Assembly: GCA_035084275.1 (NCBI GenBank)
Contig: CM068775.1
Location: 744,001-808,000 of the forward strand
Source: Hydrolagus colliei
Taxonomy: Eukaryota
Direction of reading: 5' to 3'
Length of the DNA stretch: 64,000 nt
The stretch's first letter is position 1; every line of letters starts with the position of its first letter. Below are positions 1,008 through 56,019 of the stretch, piece after piece. The position numbers and the translations under genes were made by a program. The notes beneath the pieces are model-generated. The model searched no databases. It was not told where the DNA came from and worked only from the letters and a program-made list of their open reading frames with translations.

Positions 1008-1403
1008 GATAATTCAGGCAAACAAGCATACAGTGTCTGTAGGCACTATGATACAGGAGCAGAATACAATATGTACAGCTTCAGATTGAAATCAAAGGAC
1101 AGAGTATAACAGCCTCTGTCTTTCTGTATCATTACACCTCACACATGGTAAACAGCAAATAAAGAATATCAGATAGGTGTGATGTTAAATGAAATCCCAA
1201 CATGATTTGTTATTCCCAAAAGCCCACTGTAATATGAACCAACAATAAGAAAAGTCACTAAAATTCATGGAGCTGCACAATACTATGTTTAATTCCTGTG
1301 ATTTTGTAAAATGTGTGAAACAAAACATCACATAATCCGTCACAAGACATTGGTGATAAACATAAACACACGAGGCACATCTGTGACGTTAAGGTTAAGA
1401 AAC

Positions 1404-1412
1404 TCATTTTAC
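1404..1412 (-). CDS. IGHM: IgM TM2 exon (Val-Lys-stop)
   Basis: Minus strand cttctattttccag|GTA AAA TGA; phase 0 matches the TM1 donor, giving the canonical KVK cytoplasmic tail. Confidence 0.85.
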   Translation of the reverse strand, partial: VK

Positions 1413-1512
1413 CTGGAAAATAGAAGTAAACATAGGATCAATAATTTCAGCCTTTGTGGCAAGATGGTATTTAAGTTTGTTTTTATTGATGTATAATAAT
1501 CCACAGATAGAT

Positions 1513-2148
1513 GCACACACACATACAACTGATAAGAATAAGAATAATCCTTGCATTTGATATAGCGCTTTTCACTTCTTGTATCTGTTTCAAAATATAT
1601 CACAGAATATACCATAAAATCAATTGACTCTATAATTGTGGGTGAAACGTGGCAGCCAATTGCACACAGCATTTTCCCACAAACGGTCGTGGATTGAAAT
1701 GACCAATTTTTATTATTGCTTTTTTGAAGGGATTATTATTAGGCATGTTGAGTAAGGACATTTTCCCAAGGTTTAGCACTGACTTGACTGGATTTGAACA
1801 CATGTCTCACACAGCTTGTAAGGCAAATGCTCTAACCATTGAGCTGCAGGACTGAGCTACATTAATAATAATAATAATAATTATAATCCTTGCATTTGAT
1901 ATAGCGCTTTCCACATCTTATCAACGTCCCAAAGCGCTTCACAGAATATACTGTAAGGTGAATTGACTGTATATATTTGTGGGCAATTGCGTACAGCAGT
2001 GTCCCACACACAGTCGTGGATTGAAATGACCAATTTTATTATTGTGTTTTTTTGAAGGGATTAATATTAGGCGTGTGGAGTAAGGAAACTTGCCCAAGGT
2101 TTCGCCCTGACCTGCCTGGATTTGAACACAGGTCTCCCCAGCTTGCAA
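1513..2148 (-). mobile_element. Two head-to-tail tRNA-derived SINEs with Deu-type core and L2-like tail
   Basis: Each has a tRNA-like head, a GTGGG..GCTGTG..CAATTGGCTGCC core and a GCGCTATATCAAATGCAAGGATTATT tail. Confidence 0.8.
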
Positions 2149-2303
2149 GATATCAATCAATCAAAACTAACATTTATATAGTGCCTTTTACGTCAAGAGG
2201 ACGTCCCAAGGCACTGTACAGTTAGGTAGGGACAAGACCAGGGGGGGAGGGGTCAGAAATGAAGAAAGGTAGGAATGGTAGGAAAACTGAAGAAATGTTG
2301 AAG

Positions 2304-2611
2304 AAAAATGAAGAAAGTTAGGAAATATATTTGGCTGCAGCGTTTCACCCACAAATATGCTTTCGGCTTTCCTGCTCTCCTTCCTCCTACCCCGACCCAT
2401 CCCCTAGCCATCTTTCCCCACTTTTTCTCCCAATCCCACTTCAATGACTGTTTGTGGGAAAAATGAAGAAAGGTAGAAAATATATTTGGGTGCCACGTTT
2501 CACCCACAAATATACATTCGGCTTCCCTGCTCTCCTTCTGCCTACCCCGACCCATCCCCTTGCCATCTTTCCCCCCCTTTTCCCCTAATCCCACTTCAAT
2601 GACTGTTTGTG
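2304..2611. repeat. Two tandem ~155-bp composite units
   Basis: 2304-2458 resembles 2459-2611; related sequence at ~42780-42960. Confidence 0.8.
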
Positions 2612-2760
2612 ATCCCACACAATGATCCTGCCCTGTAAGGACAGATAGAGTTTCCCAGTGCAGTGGCTGTAATTAGAATCACTATTAGTGTTGCCATGCA
2701 CAAGTATTTAACAGTAGCTGTTATATCACCTCATGGTATCAATGAATTTACTCTCCTCAC

Positions 2761-2891
2761 CTTAATTAGAGTGATGGTGGCACTATAGAACATACTCAGG
2801 AAGAAGAGGATGATGAAGGTGGAAGCAGTAGGCCAGAGGTTGCCACTTTCATCAGGTGGGAAACCTTCCAGCATCATCTCAGTTGGGAAAT
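2761..2891 (-). CDS. IGHM: IgM TM1 exon (spacer plus transmembrane helix)
   Basis: tttatcctcacag|AT TTC ... ATT AAG|gtgagg; encodes DFPTEMMLEGFPPDESGNLWPTASTFIILFFLSMFYSATITLIK with the conserved antigen-receptor TM motif. Confidence 0.95.
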
Positions 2892-3881
2892 CTGTGAGGA
2901 TAAAGGATAAGAAATATATTCAGAGGAGATTGAAACCTGAGACTTTTCTTCTTTTCCCTGTTTGATTATTAATGTATATAAAGTTTCCTAGTTGTTCACG
3001 GGCTCCCTTCCCTCTATTGAACTACACAGAACCTCCTGCCAATTCTTCCAAGCTTTTAATATTAAGAGAAATAAAGAAGAGATTGATTTAATCATTTGTG
3101 TGTTTGTTCCCAACAAATTGTTGTATCCATTGCATTGGGAAAAGTGAATCTGTGGAATTACAGAGAACGGAAATCCTTCCATTGAGACTCTGCAGGTAGA
3201 GCAAGGACAGACCTGCTCCAATCCTCCAATTCCACCTTCTGCCTGTTCTTTCGCACATTTACATGGTGACTATTGATACCATTTGAAATTCCTTCACATT
3301 ATGATATTGTGATAAAGAATCCTATATTCTAAAAGATCTCTATATAAAAATCCACTCTGCCTTTAGTGACTTTCCTGTATGTTTTATCCCGTTTGTATGG
3401 ATACAATTGTCTTTCACTCTGTGAGTCTTTCAAAACCGTCATACATTTGAAAACTTGTGTTTGATTCTCTTCACTTGTTCTTTTTATGAGAACAGCCACA
3501 ATGTTTGCAGCTGATCTTCATCACTGGAAACGCCAATCACCAGGATCATCTTTGTGATCTTTGTGAAACTTCTCTAAACCCTCTCAGCGGCTCCTATGTC
3601 CTTGGTATAATAGTGTCCAGAACTGCACACAGTAACTCCCCTCACAATCCTGCTAACTTTATATGTCATTGGCTATCGATTACCAGTGTGAAACACACAT
3701 AATCCATCTTGATGGCCTTTTGGATACACACTTGTATCTACTTATACTGCAAGCTCTCTCCCATTTCACATTTAATACTATTATTTTGCTGTAATTCCTG
3801 TAGCAAATTTTTTTCGAACTGGTGTCTATATCAATATCTATGTCAAAATGTCTATATCAAATAGTTAACATGGTTGTAAAG

Positions 3882-4290
3882 CAACAACAACAACAATTTA
3901 CATTTATATAGCGCCTTTCACGTCGGGAGGACGTCCCAAGGCGCTAAACAAGAGGCGTTTGACCCGAGCTGGGATGGGAGTGTTTGGGAAGGGGTGAAAC
4001 ACGAAGGGGAGGTAAAAGAGTTCAGGGTGGAACAAAAGGCACGATCGAAGAGGAAAGTCTTCAAATCGGCCTTGAAAGAGGAAAGTGAAGAGGCGAAACG
4101 GAGGGATTGAGGGATGGCATTCCATAAGGTGGGAGCGGAGAAACTGAAGGCCCGGCCTCCGATGGTGGGGCGGTTCGGGCGGGGGGCTTGGAGCAGGCCA
4201 AGTCCTGTTGAACGGAGGGTCCGGGTGGTCGTGTAGGGGGAGAGTAGATCGGTTAGGTAGGATGGGGCAAGGCCGTGTAAGGCCTTGTAA
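3882..4290 (-). mobile_element. L2 LINE 3' fragment (young subfamily)
   Basis: Encodes YKALHGLAPSYLTDLLSPY...RPTIGGRAFSFSAPTLWN with a (TTG)n tail; highly similar to 15750-16160. Confidence 0.9.
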
Positions 4291-4619
4291 AGCAATAGAG
4301 GAACTGACACAAACATCTAGGGAAACAAACTAAAGGGATTGAGGATTAAGTGTAACAGGGTTCATCTTTGAGCGCTATTGATTAGCACCTTTGCTGCCTG
4401 TGGCCGGCCGTGTGAGGCTGATTGGGGAAGGGATCAGATACTGGCCCTCACTGTCAAGATGATGTTTCGTATCTTAAAGAACAATAACATGGACCATATT
4501 GTCAAACAACTGCAGATAGACTTCCAGTAAAATGAGTAATAGTAAAAGTAAGCTGTGTTTGTAACAGCAACGTATAAAAGGGGAGAAGTGAGTCTCCTGC
4601 CTGACCAAGAGCTGCAGCA

Positions 4620-5135
4620 ATGTGATCAGTTTAGTGTGAGTGTGTGTGAGGGCCTGGATGATACTGAGTCTGCGTGGGCCTAAGTGATTGTGTGAGTTGG
4701 GGTGGGGGGGGAGGGGGTATGTATCTGGGTGATTGTGATGGCGTGTGAGCAATGGGTGATTGTGAATGTCTGTGAGTTTGTGTGTTTGCTTGTGGCCTGC
4801 ATGATTATGAGTGTGTGATAGGGGGTGCTGGGTGATTTTGAGTGTGTTTTAGTGAGTGGGCTTGGGTGAGTGTGAGTGTATGTGTGAGCCAGGTTGATTG
4901 TCAGTGCGTGTGTGGATCTGTGTTATTGCGAGTCTGTGCGAGTATGTGAACCTGCGTGAATGTGAGTGTATGTTAGTGTGTGTGGATCTGGATGAGTGTG
5001 AGTGTTTATGGGCATGGGTAGATGTGAATGTATATGTATGAGTGTGTGTGGGTCTGGGTGCGTGAGTGTGTATAGGTCTGGGTGGATGTGAATAAGTGTG
5101 TGTCTGTGTGTGTGTCTAAGTATGTGTGTGTTCAA
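4620..5135. repeat. Degenerate (TG)n/TGTGAG low-complexity tract
   Basis: Direct inspection; source of spurious H/T-rich ORFs. Confidence 0.85.
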
Positions 5136-5231
5136 GTGAATATGTTGCTGTTCCCAGATCTGTTTCTGGCTATGTAAGAAGTATTGGTTTTAACAGGAAA
5201 TATGGTCAAAAACATGCCAGAGTTTGCATCC

Positions 5232-5308
5232 CCCTTGTAAAAAAAAGTACCATGTTAATGGTGGTAGTAGCATGACAGTACCATTATCATGGTACTTTTT
5301 TACAAGGG
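5232..5308. mobile_element. 77-bp MITE-like palindromic element
   Basis: ~30-bp terminal inverted repeats CCCTTGTAAAAAA(AA)GTACCATG(T/A)TAATGGT, with CC on both flanks as a possible 2-bp TSD; copy at 54714-54790. Confidence 0.7.
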
Positions 5309-6050
5309 CCGAGATGTTGTCACGTGTGGAATGTGATGTTATTCAGTGAAAAAGAAAATATCCTGGAAGGGATCAGGTGTAGCTTTCCTGCACAATTCCA
5401 AAACACAATTCTGACTGAGATTGGATGGTAACTAGTGATGTAGAATGATTTGGGACAATTCTATTAACTTTTGTTTGGCCAGCTGGATGTCTTTCACATT
5501 TGGAAACCCATCCCCAGGCGTAAGGGAATCCAAACCAAACTGACTGTTCTATTAACTTGCTACTAACATTGCTTCAAACAAAAGATACAGGAACAACAAC
5601 AGCTTGCACTTATATACTGCCCTCCAAGCTGGTAAGCGTCTCAGAGCACTTAACAGTGGTGCAGTCTAACTATGAGCTTGAGGGGGATTGGGGGTAGGTG
5701 CCCATGAGCATCGACGAGGAGGAAGCATTTCAGGTGGGATATGAAAAGGTGGACAGATTCGGGCAAGGTGGAGAGAATGAGGAAGAGTGTTCCAGTGTTT
5801 GGGGGCCTAATGGTTGAAAGCGTGACCTCTGATGGTGAGACGGAGGGTGTGAGGGACAAGCAGGAGGCCAGTGCCAGTCGAGTGAGGCTCCGGGTGGTGG
5901 TTGGGGGTTGGGGGAGTGAGGAGATGGGGAAGGTGCCAGGGAGTGAGTGGATTCCAGAGGATCATTCCTCACTCTGGATATTGTGTGTATAATTAATGAT
6001 TCATTTTAAACCATCCCCTCTGTACCTGACTCATCAATACAATAATGATC

Positions 6051-6056
6051 TTTATT
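6051..6056 (-). terminator. Polyadenylation signal for secreted IgM mRNA
   Basis: AATAAA on minus strand about 90 nt after the secretory stop. Confidence 0.7.
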
Positions 6057-6145
6057 TCAGTTACTTTTTCATGACTCCAAACTGACAATGCAATGGTAGG
6101 GAGGTGAATGCACAAGAGAATAAGCGAAATGGTATTGAGGGAAGC

Positions 6146-6537
6146 TCATTGACAAGCATTCACTGTGTCCATCTGGACAAGGGAAATGTTTACAAAACTG
6201 GGTTTACCGCTGCATTTATTCACAGCTCTGGTCAGGGTCTTTAGTGGGAAAGATTCATGTCCGACCACACAGGAGTAGGTGTGTCCCCGGTCCCAGTCTT
6301 CGGCTGAGATGGTTAACATACTGTACATGGAGTAGTTGTGATCTGCACTGGCTGCCATCACCTCAGTGTTCATGTAGTTGCTGGCATCAATCACCTGGTC
6401 ATTAACAGCCCACTCCACAAAGATCTCTTTGGGAGTGAAGTCCTTCACCAGGCAGGTCAGGGTGACAGACTGATGAGTAGACAATTCTTCTGCCGAGGGG
6501 AGGAGCAGATACACTGAAGGTTGTTTCATGTGCAGAA
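6146..6537 (-). CDS. IGHM: IgM Cmu4 exon plus secretory tailpiece (internal donor after 6208 for membrane form)
   Basis: ttcccacag|TT CTG CAC ATG...; C1-set Ig domain; tail GKPSFVNISLVQMDTVNACQ* with N-glycan site and penultimate Cys typical of chondrichthyan IgM; AGC G|gtaaa donor. Confidence 0.97.
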
Positions 6538-7010
6538 CTGTGGGAAGAATACAATCAAATCAATACACTAATGGGGTCAATCAGAGGAAACCTTCAAGCA
6601 CAAGATACAGCAGAACAAGCTGAGAATGATATGTGTCTCTGTTCATTTTGTGCTCAGTGATTTGTAATTGTTGGTGTGACTGGGAACACTGGTGTGTATT
6701 GATATCTCCCAACAGTACTTTATTATTTGCATCCAGTGACCAGTGGATTAGATGTGGCTGCGTTTTCTCTGTGAAAACATGTTTAGATAATCTCCAGATA
6801 AAATGCTTAGATTATTTTAGATATTAATCACGTGAGTGAATGTAGTTATCACTTTATATAAGGGTGTATTTTCTGGTCTTTGTGGAGGGGACAAATCTAC
6901 TGACATACAGAAAAAATCCGACAGATTTTTTGATTGTTTTCACATTTGTCCAGACTCTGAAGTTACAGTAACCAAATAAATTATATATTTGCTGAAACCT
7001 GGCTCCTTAC

Positions 7011-7319
7011 CTTCCCTCTTAACTATCTTTTCTCTGATGGGAGTTGGCATATCTTCATGGCTGGCAATGCAGTTGAATTCTTTCCCACTAATCCAGTCGT
7101 GTGTAGAAATGTTTAATTCACTGATCACTTCCTGAGGCTCAGTGGCAGACTGTTTCCCATGTCCAGACTGTAAAGTTGTCTGTCCTTGTGTCCAATCCAC
7201 ATTGACGTCAAGTGGTGAATTAGTCACAATACAGGTCAGAATTACAGAGGATTCCATCAAAACCTGTTTCTGTGAAGGTGGCAAGAAAGAGACCTTGACA
7301 TCTCCGTGATCCACACATT
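7011..7319 (-). CDS. IGHM: IgM Cmu3 exon
   Basis: ccttttccag|AA TGT GTG ... GAA G|gtaagg; (E)CVDHGDVKVSFLPPS...LTC...W...FNCIASHED; phase 1/1. Confidence 0.96.
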
Positions 7320-7654
7320 CTGGAAAAGGAAAAAGAAGCAACAACAAAATTACACCTGTAATTTGTAAGGATGTGCCAAGGTGCTGGACAGTCAGGGGTC
7401 CAGATATGTCCATGGGGGAGGGGTTTGGACAGGGTTGGGTGATTGAGTGCGGAGAATCATGTGTGTGGCTGAGGGCATGGTCCAAATGGAATGTCTTCAG
7501 TCTGGCCTTGAAGGAGCCAAGGATAGGAGCATGGTGAAGGGATCATGGGATGGAGTTCACCTGGCTAGGGGCAGAGAGGCTGAAAGCCCGGTTGTCAGTG
7601 GTAGGGCTTGACAGGCGAGACACATGGAGAAGGCGGTGTCTGGTGAATAGAGGG

Positions 7655-8165
7655 AGCAGATATAGAATCATAGAATTTTATGGCACAAAAGGAAGCCATT
7701 CGGCCCATCTGGTCTGTGCCGGCTGTTTGAAAAGAGCAGCTCAATCCCACTGCCCCACTTTCTCCCCATAACCTAACAGACCTCTTCTCCCTAAATAGTG
7801 ATCTAATTCTCTTTTAAAAGCTGTTATCCAATTGGCCTCTACCACCTTTTCAGGTATTGCATTCCAGATTTGAACAACCTGCTGAGTGAAAACATTTCTC
7901 TTCAGCTCCCCTCTGCTTCGTTTTGAAACTATTTGAAATCTGTGCTCATGAGTTACAGATTCGCCCACCAGCGGAAACAGTTTTCCTGATTCACCCTGTC
8001 GAATCCCCTCATGATTTTATGAACCTCTATTAGGTCTCCTCTCAACCTTCTCTGTTCCAAAGATAAAAATCTAGCCTATTTAGCCTTTCCCCACAACTGA
8101 AGTCCCTCAATCCTGGTACCATTCTAGTAAACCTTCTTTGCACATGTTGAAAGCGAGTCAGCAGG
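7655..8165 (-). mobile_element. CR1 LINE 3' fragment nested in L2 remnants
   Basis: FQHVQRRFTRMVPGL and FTQQVVQIWNAIPEKVVEA...GYG motifs; TTCTATGA-type tail. Confidence 0.85.
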
Positions 8166-8526
8166 TCAGAGACGGAGGAGGGGGCAAGTCTGTGGATGGC
8201 TTTCAAAGTGAGGAGCAGGATTTTGAATTCTTTCCTCTGAAGGATGGGGAGCCAGTGGAGCCAGGCTAGGGTAGGTGCGAGTGTGGGATTGATGGGGTCA
8301 CAGGTTCTGGAGTGAAGTGTTGGGCAGGTTGACAAGGAGGGAGTTTCCATAGTGAAGCCTTGATGTGACAAATGCATGTACAAAGCTCACAAGCGCAATG
8401 TTCCCACTGAAATACACCAAAGGGACACAATACAAATGACCGTTAGAGCTCCCACAAGTGGACATTGGAAAGGAAACTGAGAGCCAGGTTGTTGCCATGT
8501 TTATCAGCTGGTGTAGCGCCACCTAC

Positions 8527-8856
8527 CTGAGGACTTGGTGATGTTCTTGACAATGATGGTCTGGGTGGGGACATGGGTCACCTGGCAAGTGTAAACCGCG
8601 TCGTTCCTCCAGTCTCTGGCGGGGACAGTCAGCCGGCTGCTGGTGCTGAATGTCCCATTGTCTTCTTTAACCGAGAGAGAGGTCACAACACCTGAGGTTA
8701 TGATCTGCCAGTCCTTCAGCCAGTCAACCCTGAGTTTGTCTGGACGGAAACTGGATATTAAGCAGACAGCAGTGGCCTGTTTGTTCAGTGTGATGTCTTC
8801 AGGGGAAGTCTGTGTGAGGATCACAACTGGAGGTGATGGATCCTGGAGTAACTCAA
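8527..8856 (-). CDS. IGHM: IgM Cmu2 exon
   Basis: tgtcttgcag|TT GAG TTA ... TCA G|gtaggt; (V)ELLQDPSPPVVILTQTSPEDI...AVCLI...WLK...YTCQVTH; phase 1/1. Confidence 0.95.
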
Positions 8857-9225
8857 CTGCAAGACATTATATAAGAGGTTATGTTGTGTCAGATGCAAAC
8901 ATTTTCGGTTCGATGCAATTGATATTAGTATTGAAGCATACATGGTGTGGACAGCTCTGCCTCATTGACTTGTCTGTGCTGGTCTTGTTAATGACTAAGA
9001 AAACTAGACACTATAATCTCCTCAATCATTGATTCTGATGTATTGCACTAAACTCTAAAATAAAACAGGGTTGAAGTTGGAAAAACCTCCATTCTCCCTT
9101 CCTGTCATTGAGCATTCCTTAATCCTTACTCTCCAAAGCCAGCTCGCTCTCCTTCTCTGACTTCCACCTTCCCTCTGTTGAGCGTGTAGTTTATCTGTAT
9201 TTTGTCTTGCTGCGGGTCCATCTTT

Positions 9226-9548
9226 CCCCTGGTCCTACTGTGACTCGTGGTCACAGATTTAAAATAGTTTCAAGGCGCAGTAGAGGGGAGCTGAGGAGAA
9301 ATGTTTTCACTCAGCGAGTTGTTCGAATCTGGAATGCATTGCCTGAAAAGGTGGTGGAGGCTGATTCGATAACAACTTTTAAAAGGGAATTAGATCTTTA
9401 TTTAGGGAGAACAGGTCTATTAGGCTATGGGGAGCGGGCAGTGCAGTGGGATTGAATCGCTCTTTTCAAAGAGCCGGCACAGACTAGATGGGCCGAATGG
9501 CCTCCTTTTGTGCCGTAAAATTCTATGTTTCTATGTTTCTATGTTTCT
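9226..9548 (+). mobile_element. CR1 LINE 3' end
   Basis: TRGHRFKI...FTQRVVRIWNALPEKVVEADS...GYG* and (TTTCTATG)n tail; near-identical to 25266-25650. Confidence 0.9.
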
Positions 9549-9786
9549 ACTGAACTGGTTGGAGTCCTTTCTGTCTGTTCATATCTGTCAATTATCTCCA
9601 GGTAAAGCAGCACTCGGGAAATGAGTGTAACATTCCCAGGCCATTAAAGATTCTCTGTGATGGGAGTGTTCAAATAACCTGGTGAAGAAAACTGACAGAC
9701 CCTTACCTTCAATGTCGAGTATTCTCACCTGAATGTTGTGGGAGTGACATGTCTGATTGTTCTGGACCTTGGAACACAAAACTAAC

Positions 9787-10089
9787 CTGGTAAAGGAATG
9801 TCCACATCTGGCCAGCTGCTGCTTTTAACCTTACAACGGATGTTGCTGTTGTCCATCTGGGATTCAGCGATTGTTAACTGGCTGCTAAGAGTGTAGAGAC
9901 CGTTCTTGTTGAGCACTGAGGGATATGTCTTGACTTGGTCAGTGATGGAACGTCCATTTGATGTCCAGCTAAAAGTGGCCGGCTCAGGGTTGTAGTTGGT
10001 GGCCAGACACCAGAAAGTCACTGAGCCTCTAGAAGTGGATGGTCCACAGGATGGCAGAAGAGCATAAAGACTGGGAGGAGTAGGGACAG
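9787..10089 (-). CDS. IGHM: IgM Cmu1 exon
   Basis: ttggtttccag|CT GTC CCT ... CCA G|gttag; (A)VPTPPSLYALLPSCGP...CLATNY...W...KTYPSVLNKNGLYTLSSQLTI...CKV. Confidence 0.96.
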
Positions 10090-10924
10090 CTGGAAACCAA
10101 GAGCAAAGTTGCATTCCAGTATCTTCAATTTGGTCAGACATACAGATAAACTGAAATAAACCTGTGACACAAATCAATGCAAGCTTGCCTTCATCACATT
10201 CAGGCTTGATTATACCAAGGCCATAATTGTCGGCATATCCAACTCCCATCTCCATAGTCTGTAGATCATCCAGAACTCTGTCTCACGTGTCTGCTACTGC
10301 TCCATGCTCCGTGACCCCATCTCCCCCATTCTCACAGGAGTTTATTTGCTGCCCAAAACCAGGGGATTCATTTCAATATCCTGATCCTCACAAGCCCTCT
10401 GTGGCCTTACTCCACCCTACATCTGTGACGTCCTAACTCTCTACCAACATTCCCGCTCCCTCCAATAAGTGACCTCCGGCCTACTCTATGTGCCCCGACC
10501 CACCATCGGCGTGTGAGCCTTTAGCCACTCTGGCCCTACCCTCTGGAATTCCTTCCCCCAGTCTCTCTGCCTCACCACCTCCCTAGCCTACTTCAAGTCC
10601 CACCTCAGGACCCTCATCTTCAACAGTCCCATCCGCTCCTTTCCCTCCACCCTCCCCAATTCCAACTCCTGCTTGGGTCCAAAATATTGACTGTAATTCC
10701 TTGGGTGTCCTCCCAATGTGAAAGGCGCTAAACAAATGTAACTTTGTTGTTGTTGATGTTGTATGGATGTGTGTGTTTATGTGTATACGTGTTTATGTAT
10801 GTATATATGTGTCTATGTATGTGTATTTATTTGTATACGTTCTGTGTTTATTTGTATATGTATTGTATATGTGTGTGTGCATATGTGTAACTTTTTGAGT
10901 GCGTTTATAGGTGTGTTTGTGAGT

Positions 10925-11235
10925 TTGTTTGTGAGTTTGTTGGATTCCTGTAGCTCAATTATTGGAGCACTGGCTTTACATGTGAGTTATCTGGGTTCAA
11001 TTCCTGGCAAGGTAAAACCTTGGACAAGTTTCCTTATTCCATGCACCTGATAATAATCCTCAAGTTAAAAAAATATAATAACATTGGTCAATTGAATCCA
11101 TGACTATTTGTGGGATACTGCTGCGCACAATTGGCCAGCTAATTTGCCCACAAATGTACCTTACAGTATATTCTGGGTAGCGCTTTGAGACATCTGGAAT
11201 ATGTGAGAAGTGCTATATCAAATCCATGGATTATT
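10925..11235 (+). mobile_element. Deu-type tRNA-SINE
   Basis: TCCTGTAGCTCAAT head, GTGGGATACTGCTGCGCACAATTGGC core, GTGCTATATCAAAT tail. Confidence 0.8.
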
Positions 11236-11589
11236 ATGATGATGTACATATGAATGTGTTTGTCTGCCTGTATGCGTGTAAGTATGTGTTGAGATATTAA
11301 ACCAAGGCCCAAGGCATTTAGTTGAATGTTAAAGAGCCCACGGAAATGTTCAAAAACAGAAGCTGGCTTCTCTCTCTCTCTCTCTACGTTTCTCTCTCTC
11401 CCTCTCACTCTCGCTCTCTCTCTCTCTCTCGCTCTTTCTCCGGTTGTCCTGGTCAACAATCATCTACATAAAATTTCACAATCACTTTAGGCCTGTTTGT
11501 GGGATATTGTTGTGCTCAACTGGCTTCTATGTTTAATCCACAAAATACCATCACTCCACTTTACATTACATTGACTGCCTCCTTGTCTC

Positions 11590-12092
11590 TGTGCTGGTGG
11601 ATCTCACTCTCAGATCCCTGAGTTATAGCGGGATTTATTCCTGCTCAATTGTGAATCTCTGTGTCACATTTCAATTGTGAAATGATTCACTAAAGGCAGA
11701 GATGTCTGTCCGGGAATCTGCATCGCCTGAGAAGCAGTTTAAAGTTACCACGTGACCAGTTTCAGTTTAGAAACACAGATTAAGACACTGTCTCTGTGAT
11801 TTTAATATAATTGTAAAATAAAATATTTACTGTTCTTACTCCGAGCAACAAAGTTTTAAAAATGTTAGGTCTCTGTGGCTGTTTGAAAAGCAGCTGAAAT
11901 TTAAATGTTGCTGAATTAATTTAATCTTAATTAAAATATTAATTAATTAAATGTTGTATTCAATTTGCCAATAGGTACTTGTTTCAAGATTACACAAACC
12001 TGCAGATAATCTTACACATTTATACAATTGCTTGAAAATTTAAAAGTTGAGACTTTCTGATTTACTGACATTTATTCAAACAATTAATTCTG
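11590..12092. promoter_or_regulatory. Candidate J-C intronic enhancer module, copy A
   Basis: GGTCACGTGG (muE3-like, 11748-11757 minus), CAGCTG E-box and an AT-rich tract; paralogous to 14600-15118. Confidence 0.4.
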
Positions 12093-12554
12093 TTTAGCTA
12101 GATTACAAAATCACCACAACCCATCAGACAGCCACTGTGTTGGCATTAAATTGGTATAATAAACAGTTATTTGACTAATTATGGATTATGGTCAATATTA
12201 ACTCTTTTATCAACCAAACTAGAGAAACCATACAATGCAATAACAACAACTTGCGCTAAAGCAGTCAGGATAGTGCCTCAGAGCACGTAACAGTGACAGA
12301 TCCTGACAGAGAATAACCTGTGTTGTGCCCAGGACAAGATTCTCACAAGGAATCCTGTCTGACTTGTGATTGTGATCAGTGGAACCTGCAGCAGCCGCTG
12401 CCCTAATGCTAAATAGAGACACAAATGTGTCCAGCACATCATGGACTATCTGTGTCACACATCAGCTGTGAAATGGTTAAAGACACTGGTCTGTGTCCGG
12501 AGGAGTTGATGTCATTGAAGCTGCTTTGATTGACTTTTACATTCATATTTGACA

Positions 12555-12925
12555 AAATAATAATAATTCTGGAATTTAATATATTGCCTTTATTGCATCT
12601 TCAAAAAATCTCAAATTATTTTGCAGAATACACTGTAAAGTGAATTAACCGTTTTTAAAATGAATCTGAGTAGCCAATTGTGCACAGCAGTGTCCCGCAA
12701 ACAGCCATGGATTGAGTGACCAAATTATTATTATTACTTTGATTGATTTATTAATTTTGGAAATATAATCCGCTAAAAGACAAACAAATGAGATCCTATT
12801 TACTGCTGGGTAAACAGTGTGTTTGTGTGTGTGTTTGTGGACTGAAGAAAATTGCCCAGTAGTTTGCCCTGATCAGCTCAGGAATCAAACCCAGGTCCTC
12901 TCATTTGGGATCACTGAGCACCATG
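12555..12925 (-). mobile_element. Deu-type tRNA-SINE
   Basis: Same head, core and tail as the other copies. Confidence 0.7.
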
Positions 12926-12927
12926 TG

Positions 12928-13578
12928 TAAGAACATAAGAACATAATAATTAGGAGCAGGAGAAGGCCATTCGGCCCTTCGAGCCTGCTCCACCATTCAA
13001 TAAGATCATGGCTGATCTTCTCACCTAACTCTAATTACCTGCCCTATCCCCATATCCCCTAATCCCTCTATTTTTCAAAAATCTATCAGTCTCAGCCTTG
13101 AAAATGTTCAAGGACTGAGCATCTACAGCCTTCTGGGGTAGTGAATTCCATAAATTCACTACCCTCTGAGTGAAGAAATATTTCCTCAACTCTGTTCTAA
13201 AAAGCTGACCCTTGATTTTACGACTGTGACCCCTGGTTATAGATTCTCCTACCAGGGGAAACAGTCCCTCAGTGTCTACTTTATCCAGCCCTTTAAGAAT
13301 GTTATATGTTTCAATAAGAACCCCCTAATTCTTCTGTACTCTAGAGAATACAGCCCTAAAATATTCAACCTATCCTCATAGGTCAGTCCCCTCATCCCAG
13401 GAATTAACCAAGTGAATCTACGCTGCACCCTCTCTCAGGTAAGTATGTCCTTTTTTAAATGAGGAGACCAAAACTGCCCACAATACTCTAGGTGCGGTCT
13501 CACCAAAGTCCTATACAGTTGCAGCAAGACTTCCCTACTCTTGTACTCGAAACCTTTTGAAATGTACGCTAGCATGCC
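12928..13578 (-). mobile_element. CR1 LINE 3' fragment (TTCTTATG-tail subfamily)
   Basis: GMLA..SK.FEYK...LYRTLVRPHLEYCGQFWSP motif and (TTCTTATG)n tail. Confidence 0.9.
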
Positions 13579-13847
13579 GAGACATGAAACCAAGGCCCAA
13601 TCTAAATTCAGTTAGATGTTAAAGATCCCACCGCACTTTCAAAAACAGAAGCTACTTTTTCTCTCTCTCTCCTGTTGTTCCGGTCAACAATCCTCTAAAT
13701 AAATTTCCCAATCACTCTCGGCCTGTTTTGTGGGACATTGTTGTGCTCAACTTGCTTCTGTGGTTAGTCCACAAAATACCATCACTCCACTTTATATTAT
13801 TTCCTGTGAAGCGCTTTGTGACGTCTCACCAAAGTGATAGGCACTGA

Positions 13848-14250
13848 ACAACAACAAAGTTGTCCTTATATAGTGCCTTTAACCTGGGGAGGACATCCCA
13901 CAGTGTCTGGTTGGGACCCGAGCGCGGGCGGAGGGTCGGGGGAAGGGGAAGGAGAGTTAGTGGGGCAGCCGAAGAGGAAGGTCTTGAGACCAGCCTTGAT
14001 GCAGGAAATGGAGGAAGCAAGGTGGGAGAAGCAAGGCGAAGGGGCGGAGGGATGGAGTATCCACAGTGAGGGAGCAGAGCGGCTGAAAGCCCGGCCACCG
14101 ATGGTTGGGCGGTTAGGGCAGTGGATGCAGAGCAGGCCTGATTTTGCTGAAAGGAGGGTGTGGGCAAGCTGATAGGGAGATAGTAGGTTAGAGAAATAGG
14201 CGGGGGCAAGGCCTTGAAAGTGAGGACGAGGATCTTGAATTCGATGTTAA
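13848..14250 (-). mobile_element. L2 LINE 3' fragment
   Basis: IEFKILVLTFKAL motif and (TTG)n tail. Confidence 0.85.
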
Positions 14251-14599
14251 TGTAATCCTGCAATGTAATGGAATCCTGAAGCTAATATAATGATTATTAT
14301 TGTATTTCTGTGTGATTGACTGTCTGCATACCTGCTAATGTAGGCTAGTTGGAGTTGTGTGTTGAGATATTTAAAATTTCTCCCAATGTTTACTGAAATT
14401 TTGATAACAATATTAGTATGAATTTGTATTTCCAGAAACAAACAGAGGGGTGGGGTGGGGGGAGCAGCAGCTGAATTGGCCCCAAGGTGACACAATTGTC
14501 TGTTTAAATGTAAATACAGTTTAAATATAAGATCATAATAATATTGGTTCAGCTGTGACTGTGTGAGAGAAAAACTGTTACTCTGCACGGCAATGCCTG

Positions 14600-15118
14600 T
14601 CCCTTTGCTGATGGATGTCACTCTCAGTTCCCTGAGCTGTAGCAGGATTTATTCCTCCTCAATTATGAATCTCTGTGTCACATTTCAGCTGTGAAATGGT
14701 TAAATAAAAGCAGAGATGTCTGTCCAGGAATCTGCACCGACTGAGAAGCATCTTAAAGTTACCACGTGACGAGTTTCAGTTTAGAAACACGGAGATTCAG
14801 ACCGTGTCTCTGTGATTATAATAGCATTAAAAATTATCCCAAGCTAGAATAGTTACTGTACCTCCTCCAAGTAACAAGGTTTAAACATGTACGGTCTCTG
14901 TGTCAAAAAGCAGCTGAAATTCAAATATTGCTTAATTCATTTAATCTCAAATGAAATGTTAATTAATTAATTGAGAAATGAAAAAAATGGTTTGCCAATA
15001 AATACTTAGTTCAAGATTACACAGATCTACAGATAAATTTACACATTTGTATGATTGTTTGAAAATGTCATAGTTGAAACTTTCAGATTTACTGACATTT
15101 ATAAAACAATTTATTCTG
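14600..15118. promoter_or_regulatory. Candidate J-C intronic enhancer module, copy B
   Basis: Paralogue of 11590-12092; retains CCACGTGAC (14762-14770) and CAGCTG. Confidence 0.4.
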
Positions 15119-15242
15119 CGACATTTAAACGTCCTGTTTTTTCATGTTGCAGTAAATTTGACCCAGGCTGACAGACAGATAGACAGACAGGCAGACAGGC
15201 AGCACAGGTGGTGTTAACAATGAACAACAAGTGACGCTAGTA

Positions 15243-16160
15243 TCTGTCCGACATCGAGTCCTGGACGAGGGACAACTTTTTGCAATTGAACGTGAGTAAG
15301 ACCGAGGCCCTCCTGATCGGCTCAAGCCAGCGCCTCCGCACATCGGGCACTGCCAGCCTCAACATCCAAGGCTGCACTCTCCACCTCACAAAGCCAATCA
15401 GGAACCTCGGCATCATGTTCGATCAAAAACTTTCCTTCCTCCCCCACATCCGCGCTTTGACTGGCACCGCTTATTTCCAACTGCGCAATATTGCCAGGCT
15501 CCGCAATTATCTAACCCCCAGCGCTGCCGAAACACTCGTGCATGCGTACATCACCTCACGGCTGGATTACGGAAACTCTCTCCTCGTCGGCCTCCCTGTT
15601 CCTCCATTCACAGGCTGCAGGCCATCCAAAACTCTGCAGCCCGTGTACTATCTCGCACCCGCCTCCGCGACCACATAACCCCCACCCTCGCCCGTCTCCA
15701 CTGGCTCCCCATCCTCCAGAGGATCGAGTTCAAGATCCTCGTCCTCACCTACAAGGCCTTACACGGCCTTGCCCCATCCTACCTAACCGATCTACTTTCC
15801 CCCTACAAGCCCACCAGGACCCTCCGTTCAACAAGACTTAGCCTGCTCCAAGCCCCCCGCCCGAACCGCCCCACCATCGGAGGCCGGGCCTTCAGTTTCT
15901 CCGCTCCCACCCTATGGAATGCCATCCCTCAATTCCTCTCTCTCGTTTCTTCCCTTTCCTCTTTCAAGGCCGGTTTGAAGACTTTCCTCTTCGACCGTGT
16001 CTTTTGTTCCACCCCGAATTTTTCTACCTCCCCTTCGTGTTTTACCCCTTCCCAAACACTCCCCTCTCAGCTCGGGTCACACGCCTCGTATGCAGCGCCT
16101 TGGGACGTCCTCCCGACGTGAAAGGCGCTCTATAAATGTCATGTGTTGTTGTCGTTGTTG
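15243..16160 (+). mobile_element. 5'-truncated L2 LINE (RT C-terminal region, one frameshift)
   Basis: LQLNVSKTE...RNLGIMFD...SRLDYGNSLL; 1-nt deletion near 15599; then QNSAAR...HWLPILQRIEFK and a (TTG)n tail. Confidence 0.92.
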
Positions 16161-18116
16161 TCTGCTTCCTGCCCCTTTGGCCACTGCCTTGTTACTTATA
16201 AATAAATGTAATAAACCATTGATAAAGCCAGAGACTAGCCGAACACTGGGAGCCCATTACATATCTTTACTTTAGAGATTTGCCTCCAATTAATAATAAC
16301 CTTCAAATTAATTTGAATTTAGAATCCGGTTATTCTGAAGAACTCGGGAGAAACGTAACGCACTGACCCCAGCTCCCAACAGCTCTGCACACACTGTCAG
16401 ATATCCCTGTTCAGCCATTAGCTATTACACTGCTCAATGCTGTTTAATCAGGTCTAACACACAATCACATACTGAACCCTGACATCTCAAACACAAACTG
16501 TTTCCATCCAATAATCCACAAATCACTCAATATTCTCTTTCTCTCAGCCCGAAGCTCTCTCTCTCTCTCTCTCAGTAACTGCCCAGCCAGCTCACACACT
16601 GTCCTTCCACATCACAACATGAAGCATTAAACCTGGTGCAGTGTAACTCACAGTCACAATTCCCTGCAGCACAAAGTTACACACGATAAGTAAACCATGG
16701 AATATGAAATAAATAATCCTTGCATTTGATATAATAATAATCCTTATATTTTTAAATAGCATTTTTCACGTCTTCTAGACTTTTCAAAGCGCTTCACAGA
16801 ATATACAGTAAAGTGAATAGACTGTAAATGTGTGGGTGAAACGTGGCAGCCAATTGTGCACAGCAGTGTCCCACAAACAGTCATGGATTAAATGACCAAT
16901 TTCTTATTTTAGATATTGCACTTTTCAAGTTTTTTAGGCATCTCAAAGCGCTTAACAGAATATACTGTAAAGTGAAATGACTGTATTTGTCGATTTACAA
17001 TGAAATGAGATATTGATGCCTTTCACCTTCAGCTCAGCCGTCTCTGAACATTGAGCTGATTAGCTCTGAAATCATTAGTTTGCTGCCAGCGACCAGTGTC
17101 ACTGTATGTTAAGCATCTAATTTCACCCACAAATGTACAGTCAAATCACTTTACAGTATATTCTGTGAAATGTTTTGAGTCGTCCAGAAGATGTGAAAAG
17201 CGCTATAGCTAATGTAAGGCTTATTATTATAAACAACTGGATCTCCTACACTGCAGCTGTGTTAGGTAGAGTTTACTATTTGTTTATTCAAATAAAATCT
17301 GTGTTTTTTGGCAGATCAGTTGGTGTAAAACAAGAAACTGATGATTATAAAGCAGCAGCGACCTCTTGTGTCTCTGTGCACTGTTAGGAAGCCTCATTCC
17401 ATTTGCTGTTAAAATCAATTGAAATGAAGTCTGAACTCTGACTGTCGCTGACTGAAATAGTGACTGGTGTGTGGGGAAGCTGAGGGAATGAGACTGTGAG
17501 CAACACATTAATGCCGATATCAATTAAAATAAAAACCTTCACTATTATTTCTATAATATCTGAGCAGATTGAGTGGCTGTATTTTCAATCAGATTCCCAA
17601 CAGTAAAAACCCACTTTACTTCAGACTCCCCCCCTCCCCCAGATCAGCCTCTTTAAACTGCAGCCACTTTGCTTATATTAAATAATGGATTGAAATACAT
17701 ATTGGAACCGATCAGATAACCTTCCAGTCGCTCATCCCACAACATTCAGGCCAAGATTCCCAACATGTGGGCAAAATTTCAAACACTTTTATTCAATTCC
17801 TGATCACATTATACCCCGAAAACAGCAGTCACCAGTCACTGTGATCAGACATTGCAGAAAGTCCATCAGTGTAACTTCAGCTGTACAGTCACTAACCACC
17901 ACAAATATCACCAGCAATGAACTAAACATGGACAGAATAATCCTTAAATCAACAGTGGCTGTTGAAAGCAATAGCAGTGAAATGAATTTAACTCGCACTA
18001 AACTCTGAGATAGGCCTGGCTACTCACAGGTCATTAAATTAAATAGCTGTTAAAGAGAATAAAATAAACATATAAATATAAACTCAGCATTGTGAGTGAG
18101 AGTGTCGGTTTCTTAC

Positions 18117-18503
18117 CGTCAGTCACTGTCACCATGGTGCCTTGTCCCCAGTAGTCAATGAGTACTCCAGTGTACACACTGTATACATTGTACCCTCTTG
18201 CACAGTAATAGATGGCGGTGTCTTGAACTGTCAGGCTGTTGATGGTCAGATCGCAGATGTGATCGGAATAATCTTTGATGACAGTGACACGGTTTCGGAT
18301 GCCGGGCGCATAAAGATTGTCGGAATGGGATCTCCTGTAATACCGGAGCAGCCATTCCAGCCCCTTCCCAGGAACCCGTCGGACCCAGAACATAAATTTG
18401 TTGCTGAGATCAAACCCGCTGGTTGTACAGGTGAGTCTCAGGGCCTGGCCAGGCTTCCCGGTTAGAGACGACGGCTGTGTCAGCACCACATCGGCCTGGA
18501 CAC
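18117..18503 (-). CDS. IGHV: Pre-joined (germline-joined) VH-D-JH exon
   Basis: tctttacag|GT GTC CAG GCC GAT GTG...YYCAR-GYNVYSVYTGVLIDY-WGQGTMVTVTD G|gtaaga; open frame; no RSS or spacer between V, D and J. Confidence 0.96.
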
Positions 18504-18616
18504 CTGTAAAGAACAAATGACCAAAGATTAATTATTGTGAGATATCCCGGCTCTGTGACATTGCAGAGAGAATCACACACACACACAGTCAGACTTGTCC
18601 CAATAATAGAACTCAC

Positions 18617-18662
18617 GGGAGAAGAGAGCCAGCAACAGACTGAGAGATATCAGGGACCTCAT
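18617..18662 (-). CDS. IGHV: IgH leader exon
   Basis: ATG AGG TCC...TTC TCC C|gtgagt encodes MRSLISLSLLLALFS(R)VQA; 113-nt intron, phase 1. Confidence 0.95.
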
Positions 18663-18756
18663 GTTTCTGGGCAATTGTCAGAACTGACCCTTGAGCCCAA
18701 TAACCGAGGGACAAAGATCTGCCGGATGGACAGATGGCCTCAGTCCCCAGTGACCG

Positions 18757-18830
18757 CTATTTAACAAGAGGCAGTGGGGCCAGGTGTTTGGAGAATGGAC
18801 CAATAGCTACAGGACTGAGGGGAGTCACGC
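18757..18830 (-). promoter_or_regulatory. Putative VH core promoter (TATA-like, E-box, CCAAT, TGACTC; no octamer)
   Basis: TTAAATAG 18757-18764 about 95 nt upstream of ATG; CAGGTG 18781-18786; CCAAT 18800-18804; no ATGCAAAT seen nearby. Confidence 0.4.
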
Positions 18831-50870: not shown

Positions 50871-50879
50871 TCATTTTAC
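50871..50879 (-). CDS. IGHM: IgM TM2 exon, copy 2
   Basis: Identical to 1404-1412. Confidence 0.85.
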   Translation of the reverse strand, partial: VK

Positions 50880-52241
50880 CTGGAAAATAGAAGTAAACAT
50901 AGGATCAATAATTTCAGCCTTTGTGGCAAGATGGTATTTAAGTTTGTTTTTATTGATGTATAATAATCCACAGATAGATGCACACACACATACAACTGAT
51001 AAGAATAAGAATAATCCTTGCATTTGATATAGCGCTTTTCACTTCTTGTATCTGTTTCAAAATATATCACAGAATATACCATAAAATCAATTGACTCTAT
51101 AATTGTGGGTGAAACGTGGCAGCCAATTGCACACAGCATTTTCCCACAAACGGTCGTGGATTGAAATGACCAATTTTTATTATTGCTTTTTTGAAGGGAT
51201 TATTATTAGGCATGTTGAGTAAGGACATTTTCCCAAGGTTTAGCACTGACTTGACTGGATTTGAACACATGTCTCACACAGCTTGTAAGGCAAATGCTCT
51301 AACCATTGAGCTGCAGGACTGAGCTACATTAATAATAATAATAATAATTATAATCCTTGCATTTGATATAGCGCTTTCCACATCTTATCAACGTCCCAAA
51401 GCGCTTCACAGAATATACTGTAAGGTGAATTGACTGTATATATTTGTGGGCAATTGCGTACAGCAGTGTCCCACACACAGTCGTGGATTGAAATGACCAA
51501 TTTTATTATTGTGTTTTTTTGAAGGGATTAATATTAGGCGTGTGGAGTAAGGAAACTTGCCCAAGGTTTCGCCCTGACCTGCCTGGATTTGAACACAGGT
51601 CTCCCCAGCTTGGTTTCCCCAGCTTGCAAGATATCAATCAATCAAAACTAACATTTATATAGTGCCTTTTACGTCAAGAGGACGTCCCAAGGCACTGTAC
51701 AGTTAGGTAGGGACAAGACCAGGGGGGGAGGGGTCAGAAATGAAGAAAGGTAGGAATGGTAGGAAAACTGAAGAAATGTTGAAGAAAAATGAAGAAAGTT
51801 AGGAAATATATTTGGCTGCAGTGTTTCACCCACAAATATACTTTCGGCTTTCCTGCTCTCCTTCCTCCTACCCCGACCCATCCCCTAGCCATCTTTCCCC
51901 ACTTTTTCTCCCAATCCCACTTCAATGACTGTTTGTGGGAAAAATGAAGAAAGGTAGAAAATATATTTGGGTGACACGTTTCACCCACAAATATACATTC
52001 GGCTTCCCTGCTCTCCTTCTGCCTACCCCGACCCATCCCCTTGCCATCTTTCCCCCCCTTTTCCCCTAATCCCACTTCAATGACTGTTTGTGATCCCACA
52101 CAATGATCCTGCCCTGTAAGGACAGATAGAGTTTCCCAGTGCAGTGGCTGTAATTAGAATCACTATTAGTGTTGCCATGCACAAGTATTTAACAGTAGCT
52201 GTTATATCACCTCATGGTATCAATGAATTTACTCTCCTCAC

Positions 52242-52372
52242 CTTAATTAGAGTGATGGTGGCACTATAGAACATACTCAGGAAGAAGAGGATGATGAAGG
52301 TGGAAGCAGTAGGCCAGAGGTTGCCACTTTCATCAGGTGGGAAACCTTCCAGCATCATCTCAGTTGGGAAAT
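52242..52372 (-). CDS. IGHM: IgM TM1 exon, copy 2
   Basis: Matches 2761-2891, splice sites intact. Confidence 0.95.
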
Positions 52373-54713
52373 CTGTGAGGATAAAGGATAAGAAATATAT
52401 TCAGAGGAGATTGAAACCTGAGACTTTTCTTCTTTTCCCTGTTTGATTATTAATGTATATAAAGTTTCCTAGTTGTTCACGGGCTCCCTTCCCTCTATTG
52501 AACTACACAGAACCTCCTGCCAATTCTTCCAAGCTTTTAATATTAAGAGAAATAAAGAAGAGATTGATTTAATCATTTGTGTGTTTGTTCCCAACAAATT
52601 GTTGTATCCATTGCATTGGGAAAAGTGAATCTGTGGAATTACAGAGAACGGAAATCCTTCCATTGAGACTCTGCAGGTAGAGCAAGGACAGACCTGCTCC
52701 AATCCTCCAATTCCACCTTCTGCCTGTTCTTTCGCACATTTACATGGTGACTATTGATACCATTTGAAATTCCTTCACATTATGATATTGTGATAAAGAA
52801 TCCTATATTCTAAAAGATCTCTATATAAAAATCCACTCTGCCTTTAGTGACTTTCCTGTATGTTTTATCCCGTTTGTATGGATACAATTGTCTTTCACTC
52901 TGTGAGTCTTTCAAAACCGTCATACATTTGAAAACTTGTGTTTGATTCTCTTCACTTGTTCTTTTTATGAGAACAGCCACAATGTTTGCAGCTGATCTTC
53001 ATCACTGGAAACGCCAATCACCAGGATCATCTTTGTGATCTTTGTGAAACTTCTCTAAACCCTCTCAGCGGCTCCTATGTCCTTGGTATAATAGTGTCCA
53101 GAACTGCACACAGTAACTCCCCTCACAATCCTGCTAACTTTATATGTCATTGGCTATCGATTACCAGTGTGAAACACACATAATCCATCTTGATGGCCTT
53201 TTGGATACACACTTGTATCTACTTATACTGCAAGCTCTCTCCCATTTCACATTTAATACTATTATTTTGCTGTAATTCCTGTAGCAAATTTTTTTCGAAC
53301 TGGTGTCTATATCAATATCTATGTCAAAATGTCTATATCAAATAGTTAACATGGTTGTAAAGCAACAACAACAACAATTTACATTTATATAGCGCCTTTC
53401 ACGTCGGGAGGACGTCCCAAGGCGCTAAACAAGAGGCGTTTGACCCGAGCTGGGATGGGAGTGTTTGGGAAGGGGTGAAACACGAAGGGGAGGTAAAAGA
53501 GTTCAGGGTGGAACAAAAGGCACGATCGAAGAGGAAAGTCTTCAAATCGGCCTTGAAAGAGGAAAGTGAAGAGGCGAAACGGAGGGATTGAGGGATGGCA
53601 TTCCATAAGGTGGGAGCGGAGAAACTGAAGGCCCGGCCTCCGATGGTGGGGCGGTTCGGGCGGGGGGCTTGGAGCAGGCCAAGTCCTGTTGAACGGAGGG
53701 TCCGGGTGGTCGTGTAGGGGGAGAGTAGATCGGTTAGGTAGGATGGGGCAAGGCCGTGTAAGGCCTTGTAAAGCAATAGAGGAACTGACACAAACATCTA
53801 GGGAAACAAACTAAAGGGATTGAGGATTAAGTGTAACAGGGTTCATCTTTGAGCGCTATTGATTAGCACCTTTGCTGCCTGTGGCCGGCCGTGTGAGGCT
53901 GATTGGGGAAGGGATCAGATACTGGCCCTCACTGTCAAGATGATGTTTCGTATCTTAAAGAACAATAACATGGACCATATTGTCAAACAACTGCAGATAG
54001 ACTTCCAGTAAAATGAGTAACAGTAAAAGTAAGCTGTGTTTGTAACAGCAACGTATAAAAGGGGAGAAGTGAGTCTCCTGCCTGACCAAGAGCTGCAGCA
54101 ATGTGATCAGTTTAGTGTGAGTGTGTGTGAGGGCCTGGATGATACTGAGTCTGCGTGGGCCTAAGTGATTGTGTGAGTTGGGGTGGGGGGGGAGGGGGGG
54201 ATGTATCTGGGTGATTGTGATGGTGTGTGAGCAATGGGTGATTGTGAATGTCTGTGAGTTTGTGTGTTTGCTTGTGGCCTGCATGATTATGAGTGTGTGA
54301 TAGGGGGTGCTGGGTGATTTTGAGTGTGTTTTAGTGAGTGGGCTTGGGTGAGTGTGAGTGTATGTGTGAGCCAGGTTGATTGTCAGTGCGTGTGTGGATC
54401 TGTGTTATTGCGAGTCTGTGCGAGTATGTGAACCTGCGTGAATGTGAGTGTATGTTAGTGTGTGTGGATCTGGATGAGTGTGAGTGTTTATGGGCATGGG
54501 TAGATGTGAATGTATATGTATGAGTGTGTGTGGGTCTGGGTGCGTGAGTGTGTTTAGGTCTGGGTGGATGTGAATAAGTGTGTGTCTGTGTGTGTGTCTA
54601 AGTATGTGTGTGTTCAAGTGAATATGTTGCTGTTCCCAGATCTGTTTCTGGCTATGTAAGAAGTATTGGTTTTAACAGGAAATATGGTCAAAAACATGCC
54701 AGAGTTTGCATCC

Positions 54714-54790
54714 CCCTTGTAAAAAAAAGTACCATGTTAATGGTGGTAGTAGCATGACAGTACCATTATCATGGTACTTTTTTACAAGGG
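54714..54790. mobile_element. 77-bp MITE-like element, copy 2
   Basis: Matches 5232-5308. Confidence 0.7.
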
Positions 54791-55627
54791 CCGAGATGTT
54801 GTCACGTGTGGAATGTGATGTTATTCAGTGAAAAAGAAAATATCCTGGAAGGGATCAGGTGTAGCTTTCCTGCACAATTCCAAAACACAATTCTGACTGA
54901 GATTGGATGGTAACTAGTGATGTAGAATGATTTGGGACAATTCTATTAACTTTTGTTTGGCCAGCTGGATGTCTTTCACATTTGGAAACCCATCCCCAGG
55001 CGTAAGGGAATCCAAACCAAACTGACTGTTCTATTAACTTGCTACTAACATTGCTTCAAACAAAAGATACAGGAACAACAACAGCTTGCACTTATATACT
55101 GCCCTCCAAGCTGGTAAGCGTCTCAGAGCACTTAACAGTGGTGCAGTCTAACTATGAGCTTGAGGGGGATTGGGGGTAGGTGCCCATGAGCATCGACGAG
55201 GAGGAAGCATTTCAGGTGGGATATGAAAAGGTGGACAGATTCGGGCAAGGTGGAGAGAATGAGGAAGAGTGTTCCAGTGTTTGGGGGCCTAATGGTTGAA
55301 AGCGTGACCTCTGATGGTGAGACGGAGGGTGTGAGGGACAAGCAGGAGGCCAGTGCCAGTCGAGTGAGGCTCCGGGTGGTGGTTGGGGGTTGGGGGAGTG
55401 AGGAGATGGGGAAGGTGCCAGGGAGTGAGTGGATTCCAGAGGATCATTCCTCACTCTGGATATTGTGTGTATAATTAATGATTCATTTTAAACCATCCCC
55501 TCTGTACCTGACTCATCAATACAATAATGATCTTTATTTCAGTTACTTTTTCATGACTCCAAACTGACAATGCAATGGTAGGGAGGTGAATGCACAAGAG
55601 AATAAGCAAAATGGTATTGAGGGAAGC

Positions 55628-56019
55628 TCATTGACAAGCATTCACTGTGTCCATCTGGACAAGGGAAATGTTTACAAAACTGGGTTTACCGCTGCATTTA
55701 TTCACAGCTCTGGTCAGGGTCTTTAGTGGGAAAGATTCATGTCCGACCACACAGGAGTAGGTGTGTCCCCGGTCCCAGTCTTCGGCTGAGATGGTTAACA
55801 TACTGTACATGGAGTAGTTGTGATCTGCACTGGCTGCCATCACCTCAGTGTTCATGTAGTTGCTGGCATCAATCACCTGGTCATTAACAGCCCACTCCAC
55901 AAAGATCTCTTTGGGAGTGAAGTCCTTCACCAGGCAGGTCAGGGTGACAGACTGATGAGTAGACAATTCTTCTGCCGAGGGGAGGAGCAGATACACTGAA
56001 GGTTGTTTCATGTGCAGAA
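55628..56019 (-). CDS. IGHM: IgM Cmu4 plus secretory tail, copy 2
   Basis: Same translation as copy 1. Confidence 0.97.

Follow-up and report, generated by a model that had tools for sequence, protein, structure and literature searches.

The question raised by this locus is whether an antibody gene found fully assembled in genomic DNA is inherited in that state and can still serve as a working gene. The locus lies in a 64,000-nt stretch of the genome of the spotted ratfish Hydrolagus colliei (assembly GCA_035084275.1, contig CM068775.1, positions 744,001 to 808,000 of the forward strand), which is referred to below as the window and whose numbering is used throughout. It contains an immunoglobulin M (IgM) heavy-chain gene in which segments V (variable), D (diversity) and J (joining) form a single exon. 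Joined and partly joined immunoglobulin (Ig) clusters are a textbook trait of cartilaginous fishes (PMC4279169, PMC5192425). The analysis indicates with good confidence that the locus is a true germline-joined, i.e. VDJ-fused, chimaeroid IgM cluster, most probably the VDJ-joined Ig heavy-chain (IgH) gene that has been reported from this species.

Gene structure and predicted products

The gene was delineated from the list of open reading frames (ORFs) and the sequence itself. It is located on the minus strand, spans 17.3 kb and consists of eight exons, namely the leader, the fused VDJ exon, four constant-domain exons (CH1-CH4) and two transmembrane exons (TM1 and TM2). Its features, in the direction of transcription, are the following.

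18757..18764 (-): TATA-like TTAAATAG, putative promoter element, at -101 from the ATG
18617..18662 (-): leader exon, 46 nt; ATG at 18662; phase 1 donor GTGAGT
18504..18616 (-): leader intron, 113 nt, still in the DNA
18117..18503 (-): fused V-D-J exon, 387 nt, in frame, with donor GTAAGA next to it; Pfam V-set, E=6.5e-15; the database protein P0001 (see below) is identical over 127 aa
18151..18201 (-): complementarity-determining region 3 (CDR3), 17 codons, ARGYNVYSVYTGVLIDY
10090..18116 (-): J-CH1 intron, 8027 nt, rich in repeats
9787..10089 (-): CH1 exon, with precursor Cys159 at the usual light-chain-bonding site; supported by Pfam
8527..8856 (-): CH2 exon, intact and in phase; supported by Pfam
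7011..7319 (-): CH3 exon; supported by Pfam
6146..6537 (-): CH4 exon with secretory tailpiece GKPSFVNISLVQMDTVNACQ; stop codon at 6148-6146
after 6208 (-): internal CH4 donor G/GTAAAC for the membrane form
6051..6056 (-): AATAAA of the secretory form, 90 nt past the secretory stop
2761..2891 (-): TM1 exon (...NLWPTASTFIILFFLSMFYSATITLIK)
1404..1412 (-): TM2 exon, GTAAAATGA (Val-Lys-stop)
1288..1293 (-): ATTAAA of the membrane form, 111 nt past the membrane stop; a further AATAAA is found at 1007-1002

V, D and J are contiguous in one reading frame (...AIYYCAR-GYNVYSVYTGVLIDY-WGQGTMVTVTD), and the VDJ side abuts CH1 in the predicted spliced transcript as ...GTGACTGACG. All introns have GT...AG at their borders. 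The Ig exons are all joined in phase 1, as is the internal CH4 donor, while TM1 and TM2 are joined in phase 0. Scripted splicing of the exons results in open frames of 588 aa for the secreted and 614 aa for the membrane precursor.

An earlier sequence-only reading of this DNA had described an in-frame fusion of V, D and J, a retained leader intron, the loss of all recombination signal sequences (RSSs) and agreeing splice phases, and had predicted a secreted and a membrane precursor with all four Cmu domains. The present analysis bears this description out. The fusion is seen in the single contiguous frame, the leader intron of 113 nt is present at 18616-18504, the phases agree as given above, and both precursor lengths and the four domains are reproduced exactly by splicing and Pfam. 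With respect to RSSs, a scan of positions 9001-20500 on both strands returned matches at chance level only, with at least one heptamer and three nonamer mismatches. A heptamer/nonamer-like pair in the leader intron at 18557 is likewise weak and at chance level, and was rejected as an RSS. No other V-like exon was found in the window by tblastn with the whole chain. An origin as a retrocopy of a processed transcript is ruled out, because the DNA still contains the leader and J-C introns.

Germline status of the joint

A protein search provided evidence on the status of the joint. The database protein P0001 (127 aa) is 100% identical to the genomic frame and forms an exact substring of it, with the whole CDR3 included. 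Its source is MetaClust only. P0001 ends in ...VTVTDG, in contrast to ...VTVTDA in the spliced chain, and its final Gly corresponds to GGT, the first codon of the intron. Since its last residue is encoded by the intron, P0001 was translated from genomic DNA and not from cDNA. A sibling match, P0004, represents a different V with identical leader and framework region 1, and has the early UniParc number UPI0000118EAF.

The window also contains an intact G protein-coupled receptor (GPCR) gene, for which no self-match was found in the same protein database. The database therefore does not include the annotation of this assembly, which makes P0001 an independent record of the joint. Among the protein search matches, no database sequence combines this V with another CDR3. 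Judged by these comparisons, a germline origin of the joint appears well supported, albeit indirectly. The sequence-only reading had also placed the gene among the germline-joined IgH clusters of cartilaginous fishes, including a low-copy joined class in ratfish. This context fits, and an exact match to the joined V exon is present in MetaClust.

Identity of the mu chain

The encoded chain is of the mu type. Pfam recognizes a V-set domain in the VDJ exon and a C1-set domain in each of the four constant exons. Residues 3-128 of CH4 and its tail align with human IgM mu chains of solved pentamer structures, tailpiece included, and the mu-type tailpiece GKPSFVNISLVQMDTVNACQ carries an N-glycosylation site (NIS) as well as the penultimate tailpiece Cys. 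The TM1 segment NLWPTASTFIILFFLSMFYSATITLIK has a match (E ~4e-8) in structures of the human B-cell receptor, namely the transmembrane helix of membrane mu. The closest named relatives are proteins of Callorhinchus milii, with 71% identity for V and 83% for CH4. Together with the value for the neighboring GPCR (see below), these identities point to a holocephalan that is not Callorhinchus.

The cysteines of the precursor comprise the canonical V pair, CH1 Cys159 for the light chain, one pair per constant domain, one Cys at the start of CH3 and the tailpiece Cys. The light-chain interface of the heavy-chain variable domain (VH) is mostly of the usual kind, with GKGLEWL (Gly44-Leu45-Trp47) and WGQG. 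A CH1-less, heavy-chain-only type of IgM, in which a second CH2 takes the place of CH1 and the VH interface is altered in a nanobody-like manner, is known from holocephalans; this type is ruled out here, as CH1 with its light-chain Cys and the interface residues between VH and the light-chain variable domain (VL) are present. Given CH1 and the usual interface in VH, the product is a conventional four-domain mu chain.

Relative to Callorhinchus, the chain has two extra Cys, one in framework 3 of VH (see below) and one just before the tailpiece and the TM splice point (NKCS, compared to NKSS in Callorhinchus). Their codons lie approximately at 18222-18224 (residue 99) and 6220-6222 (residue 567), respectively, on the minus strand, and the total number of Cys is odd (15).

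Relation to known joined immunoglobulin genes

The VDJ-joined IgH gene of Hydrolagus colliei is said to go back to Rast, Amemiya, Litman, Strong and Litman (1998, Immunogenetics 47:234). In PMC12227049, a spotted-ratfish IgH gene with joined VDJ is cited as 'Hyco-gjH', 1998, and the CH1-less ratfish IgM is traced to the same 1998 paper in PMC3149040. The 1998 gene and the gene in the window share the type of locus, a holocephalan IgM cluster, and the germline fusion of V, D and J. As P0001 constitutes an exact, separate record of the joined exon, the gene in the window is most probably the one reported in 1998.

The nurse-shark gene IgM1gj was reportedly described by Rumfelt et al. in 2001. 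It resembles the ratfish gene in having a germline-joined VDJ on an IgM-type chain and thereby a predetermined binding site that does not depend on the recombination-activating genes (RAG) (PMC4279169, PMC5192425). In contrast to the ratfish gene, which keeps all four constant domains, IgM1gj is devoid of C-mu-2 and has three. IgM1gj is known to be expressed preferentially in neonates, in the epigonal organ, and to have a joined light chain as its partner. As the nurse-shark and ratfish genes belong to elasmobranch and holocephalan lineages, respectively, V, D and J were presumably joined in two independent events.

For the horned shark, joined and partly joined VH clusters were reportedly described by Kokubu et al. 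in 1988. These clusters and the joined light-chain genes of the nurse shark are likewise of the cluster type, were recombined in germ cells, are free of RSSs and have kept their introns (PMC2193156). The nurse-shark examples in that comparison are light chains and thus VJ only. For the joined heavy-chain genes of the horned shark, expression was not detected (PMC2193156).

A further example comes from the whale shark. The protein P0008, annotated as 'Ig heavy chain V region', extends across CDR3 and J (...YYCARDWGGSLHYWGQETMVTVT...) and, from its sequence, looks like a further annotated genomic VDJ of the germline-joined kind. It is 50% identical to the ratfish V, has another CDR3 and is not orthologous.

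Duplication of the locus

Positions 1-14519 (copy A) and 49468-64000 (copy B) of the window form a direct duplication with 99.78% identity, 16 substitutions and 3 indels. The period is ~49.47-49.48 kb, the offset at the window end being 49481, and each copy is truncated at one end of the window. The most probable unit is a cassette of ~49.5 kb, arranged in tandem and present in at least two copies. Copy B contains the constant-region part of a second IgM cluster:

50871..59571 (-): constant-region and TM exons of the second IgM cluster, all intact; one Asn-to-His and one silent change, both in CH1

Predicted function and alternative explanations

Under the germline-joined reading, the gene would be transcribed from its own V promoter and spliced normally to give a conventional four-domain mu chain, as from any split gene. 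A transcript that includes the tailpiece and ends at its poly(A) site would yield a secreted, polymer-forming product, whereas one spliced from the internal CH4 donor to TM1 and TM2 would yield a B-cell-receptor form. As no rearrangement would be needed, the same V region would be made in every transcribing cell. Its specificity would be predetermined and, by analogy, probably of use early in life. An invariant, innate-like, RAG-independent antibody modelled on nurse-shark IgM1gj is a reasonable proposal for the product (PMC4279169, PMC5192425).

Several observations weigh against the germline-joined reading or parts of it. The identity of P0001 with the 1998 ratfish record is itself inferred. 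At the promoter, no octamer ATGCAAAT/ATTTGCAT with 0-1 mismatch was found within ~500 nt upstream of the ATG (18663-19500 scanned). The nearest octamer with one mismatch is located at -523, and the only closer candidate, ATTTGCGG, has two mismatches. Ig V promoters do not usually have such an octamer-poor upstream region. In the V domain, framework 3 carries an unpaired Cys (DHICDL, where Callorhinchus has Phe in NIFDL), and Arg replaces the usual Gln39 at the VH/VL interface (WVRR). These two features would also be compatible with a weakly expressed or decaying gene. The V exon of copy B lies beyond the window end, and purifying selection is not demonstrable, since 16 substitutions in 14.5 kb, of which 2 are exonic, leave the copies too similar.

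Some of these observations also speak for the likeliest of the alternatives, namely that the gene is germline-joined yet silent, or a decaying relic. The joined heavy-chain genes of the horned shark, with their undetected expression (PMC2193156), are a precedent for this, and the missing canonical octamer, the odd framework-3 Cys with the Gln39-to-Arg replacement and the lack of a selection signal between near-identical copies would agree with it. The state of the gene speaks for a functional locus instead: all eight exons with their splice sites, the two poly(A) signals, the tailpiece and the structural cysteines are intact, and so are the constant and TM exons of the second copy. The ratfish joined gene of Rast et al. 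(1998) was reportedly found as cDNA. A relic is considered unlikely.

A second alternative concerns the number of copies. Copy B could be an assembly artefact in which two haplotypes of one locus were laid in tandem, so that the haploid genome would contain a single joined gene. The substitution divergence of only 0.11% is within the allelic range and would permit this. However, the window is gap-free (no N), and the copies are 35 kb apart, separated by unique sequence with the GPCR gene and tRNA genes, which fits a real tandem unit of 49.5 kb. The artefact is thus improbable, if anything slightly more so than a silent gene, and the tandem cassette is retained as the probable arrangement.

Origin of the joint

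The CDR3 contains three perfect 8-nt palindromes, TGTATACA, GTGTACAC and GAGTACTC, at 18187-18180, 18177-18170 and 18167-18160 on the minus strand, separated by 2-nt gaps and thus arranged with a 10-nt period. At least three such palindromes were obtained in 238 of 300,000 composition-matched shuffles. Elsewhere in the window, comparable palindrome clusters occur only within simple repeats.

That the joint arose somatically, by V(D)J rearrangement in a single B-cell clone, and was taken up by the assembler in place of a split germline locus, is very improbable, for although the CDR3 resembles a productive joint of the ordinary kind and its palindromes are possibly P-type, the identical V exon is recorded as a genomic-DNA translation in a database that lacks this assembly's annotation, this V with a different CDR3 is absent among the database sequences, and a single clone would seldom win the assembly consensus.

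For the germline-joined gene, the complete loss of RSSs together with the normal-looking CDR3 fits a RAG-type recombination in a germ cell. In this model, an ordinary V-D-D-J-C-mu minilocus would have had its V, D1, D2 and J recombined by RAG in a past germ cell; the joining would have removed all RSSs, while the leader intron and the J-C intron stayed in place. RAG-type joining in germ cells has been argued, with evidence, for nurse-shark light-chain genes (PMC2193156).

Tentatively, and with considerable doubt, the palindromes may be read as 4-nt P-nucleotide tracts at the coding ends D1-3', D2-5' and D2-3', i.e. as a fossil of hairpin opening that was followed later by amplification of the 49.5-kb cassette. 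Alternatively, they could stem from palindromic D segments. If the first explanation were true, the P-nucleotide footprint would be direct evidence that a holocephalan germ cell underwent RAG-type recombination in which the ends were hardly trimmed.

Germline-joined antibody genes show that RAG acted in germ cells. They illustrate that a rearranging receptor gene can revert to a fixed, inherited receptor, which bears on the origin of innate-like specificities and of surrogate chains. A germline-joined IgM gene of the ratfish type is already known, and in principle the locus adds nothing new to this. It supplies the full genomic context with all exons and the secreted and membrane forms, and makes a clean test case for the timing, site of expression and binding target of such a fixed antibody. 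The part that may be new is the context only, namely the ~49.5-kb cassette in at least two copies with a GPR139-like gene and three tRNA genes; this context was not found in the accessible literature.

Neighboring genes and repeats

The GPCR gene lies between the two IgM clusters at 23372-24298 on the minus strand. It is an intact, single-exon gene of 308 aa that belongs to the rhodopsin family (Pfam 7tm_1, E=9e-22) and shares 75% identity with a Callorhinchus protein. It is GPR139-like and a member of a very large expansion of 'probable GPR139' proteins in cartilaginous fishes, with more than 2000 matches at E<=1e-20. The tRNA genes of the cassette are encoded on the opposite strand:

28446-28518 (+): tRNA-Asn (GTT)
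30801-30883 (+): tRNA-Ser (AGA)
32647-32718 (+): tRNA-Glu (TTC)

Two families of interspersed repeats are found in the window. Members of the first share an ORF fragment (...GHRFKIVSRRSRGELRRNVFTQRVV...GYGE...QWD) and are located at 7741-7968 (-), 9207-9455 (+), 25354-25626 (-) and 31664-32008 (+); two copies of this GHRFKIVSRRSRGELRRNVFTQRVV-bearing repeat lie within IgM introns. The second family is characterized by ORFs with ...APWDVLPT and occurs at 3918-4316, 15750-16157 and 53399-53797. Just before the start of copy B, at 48200-49000, a G/C-skewed low-complexity tract contains long Pro/Ser/Leu-rich ORFs on both strands.

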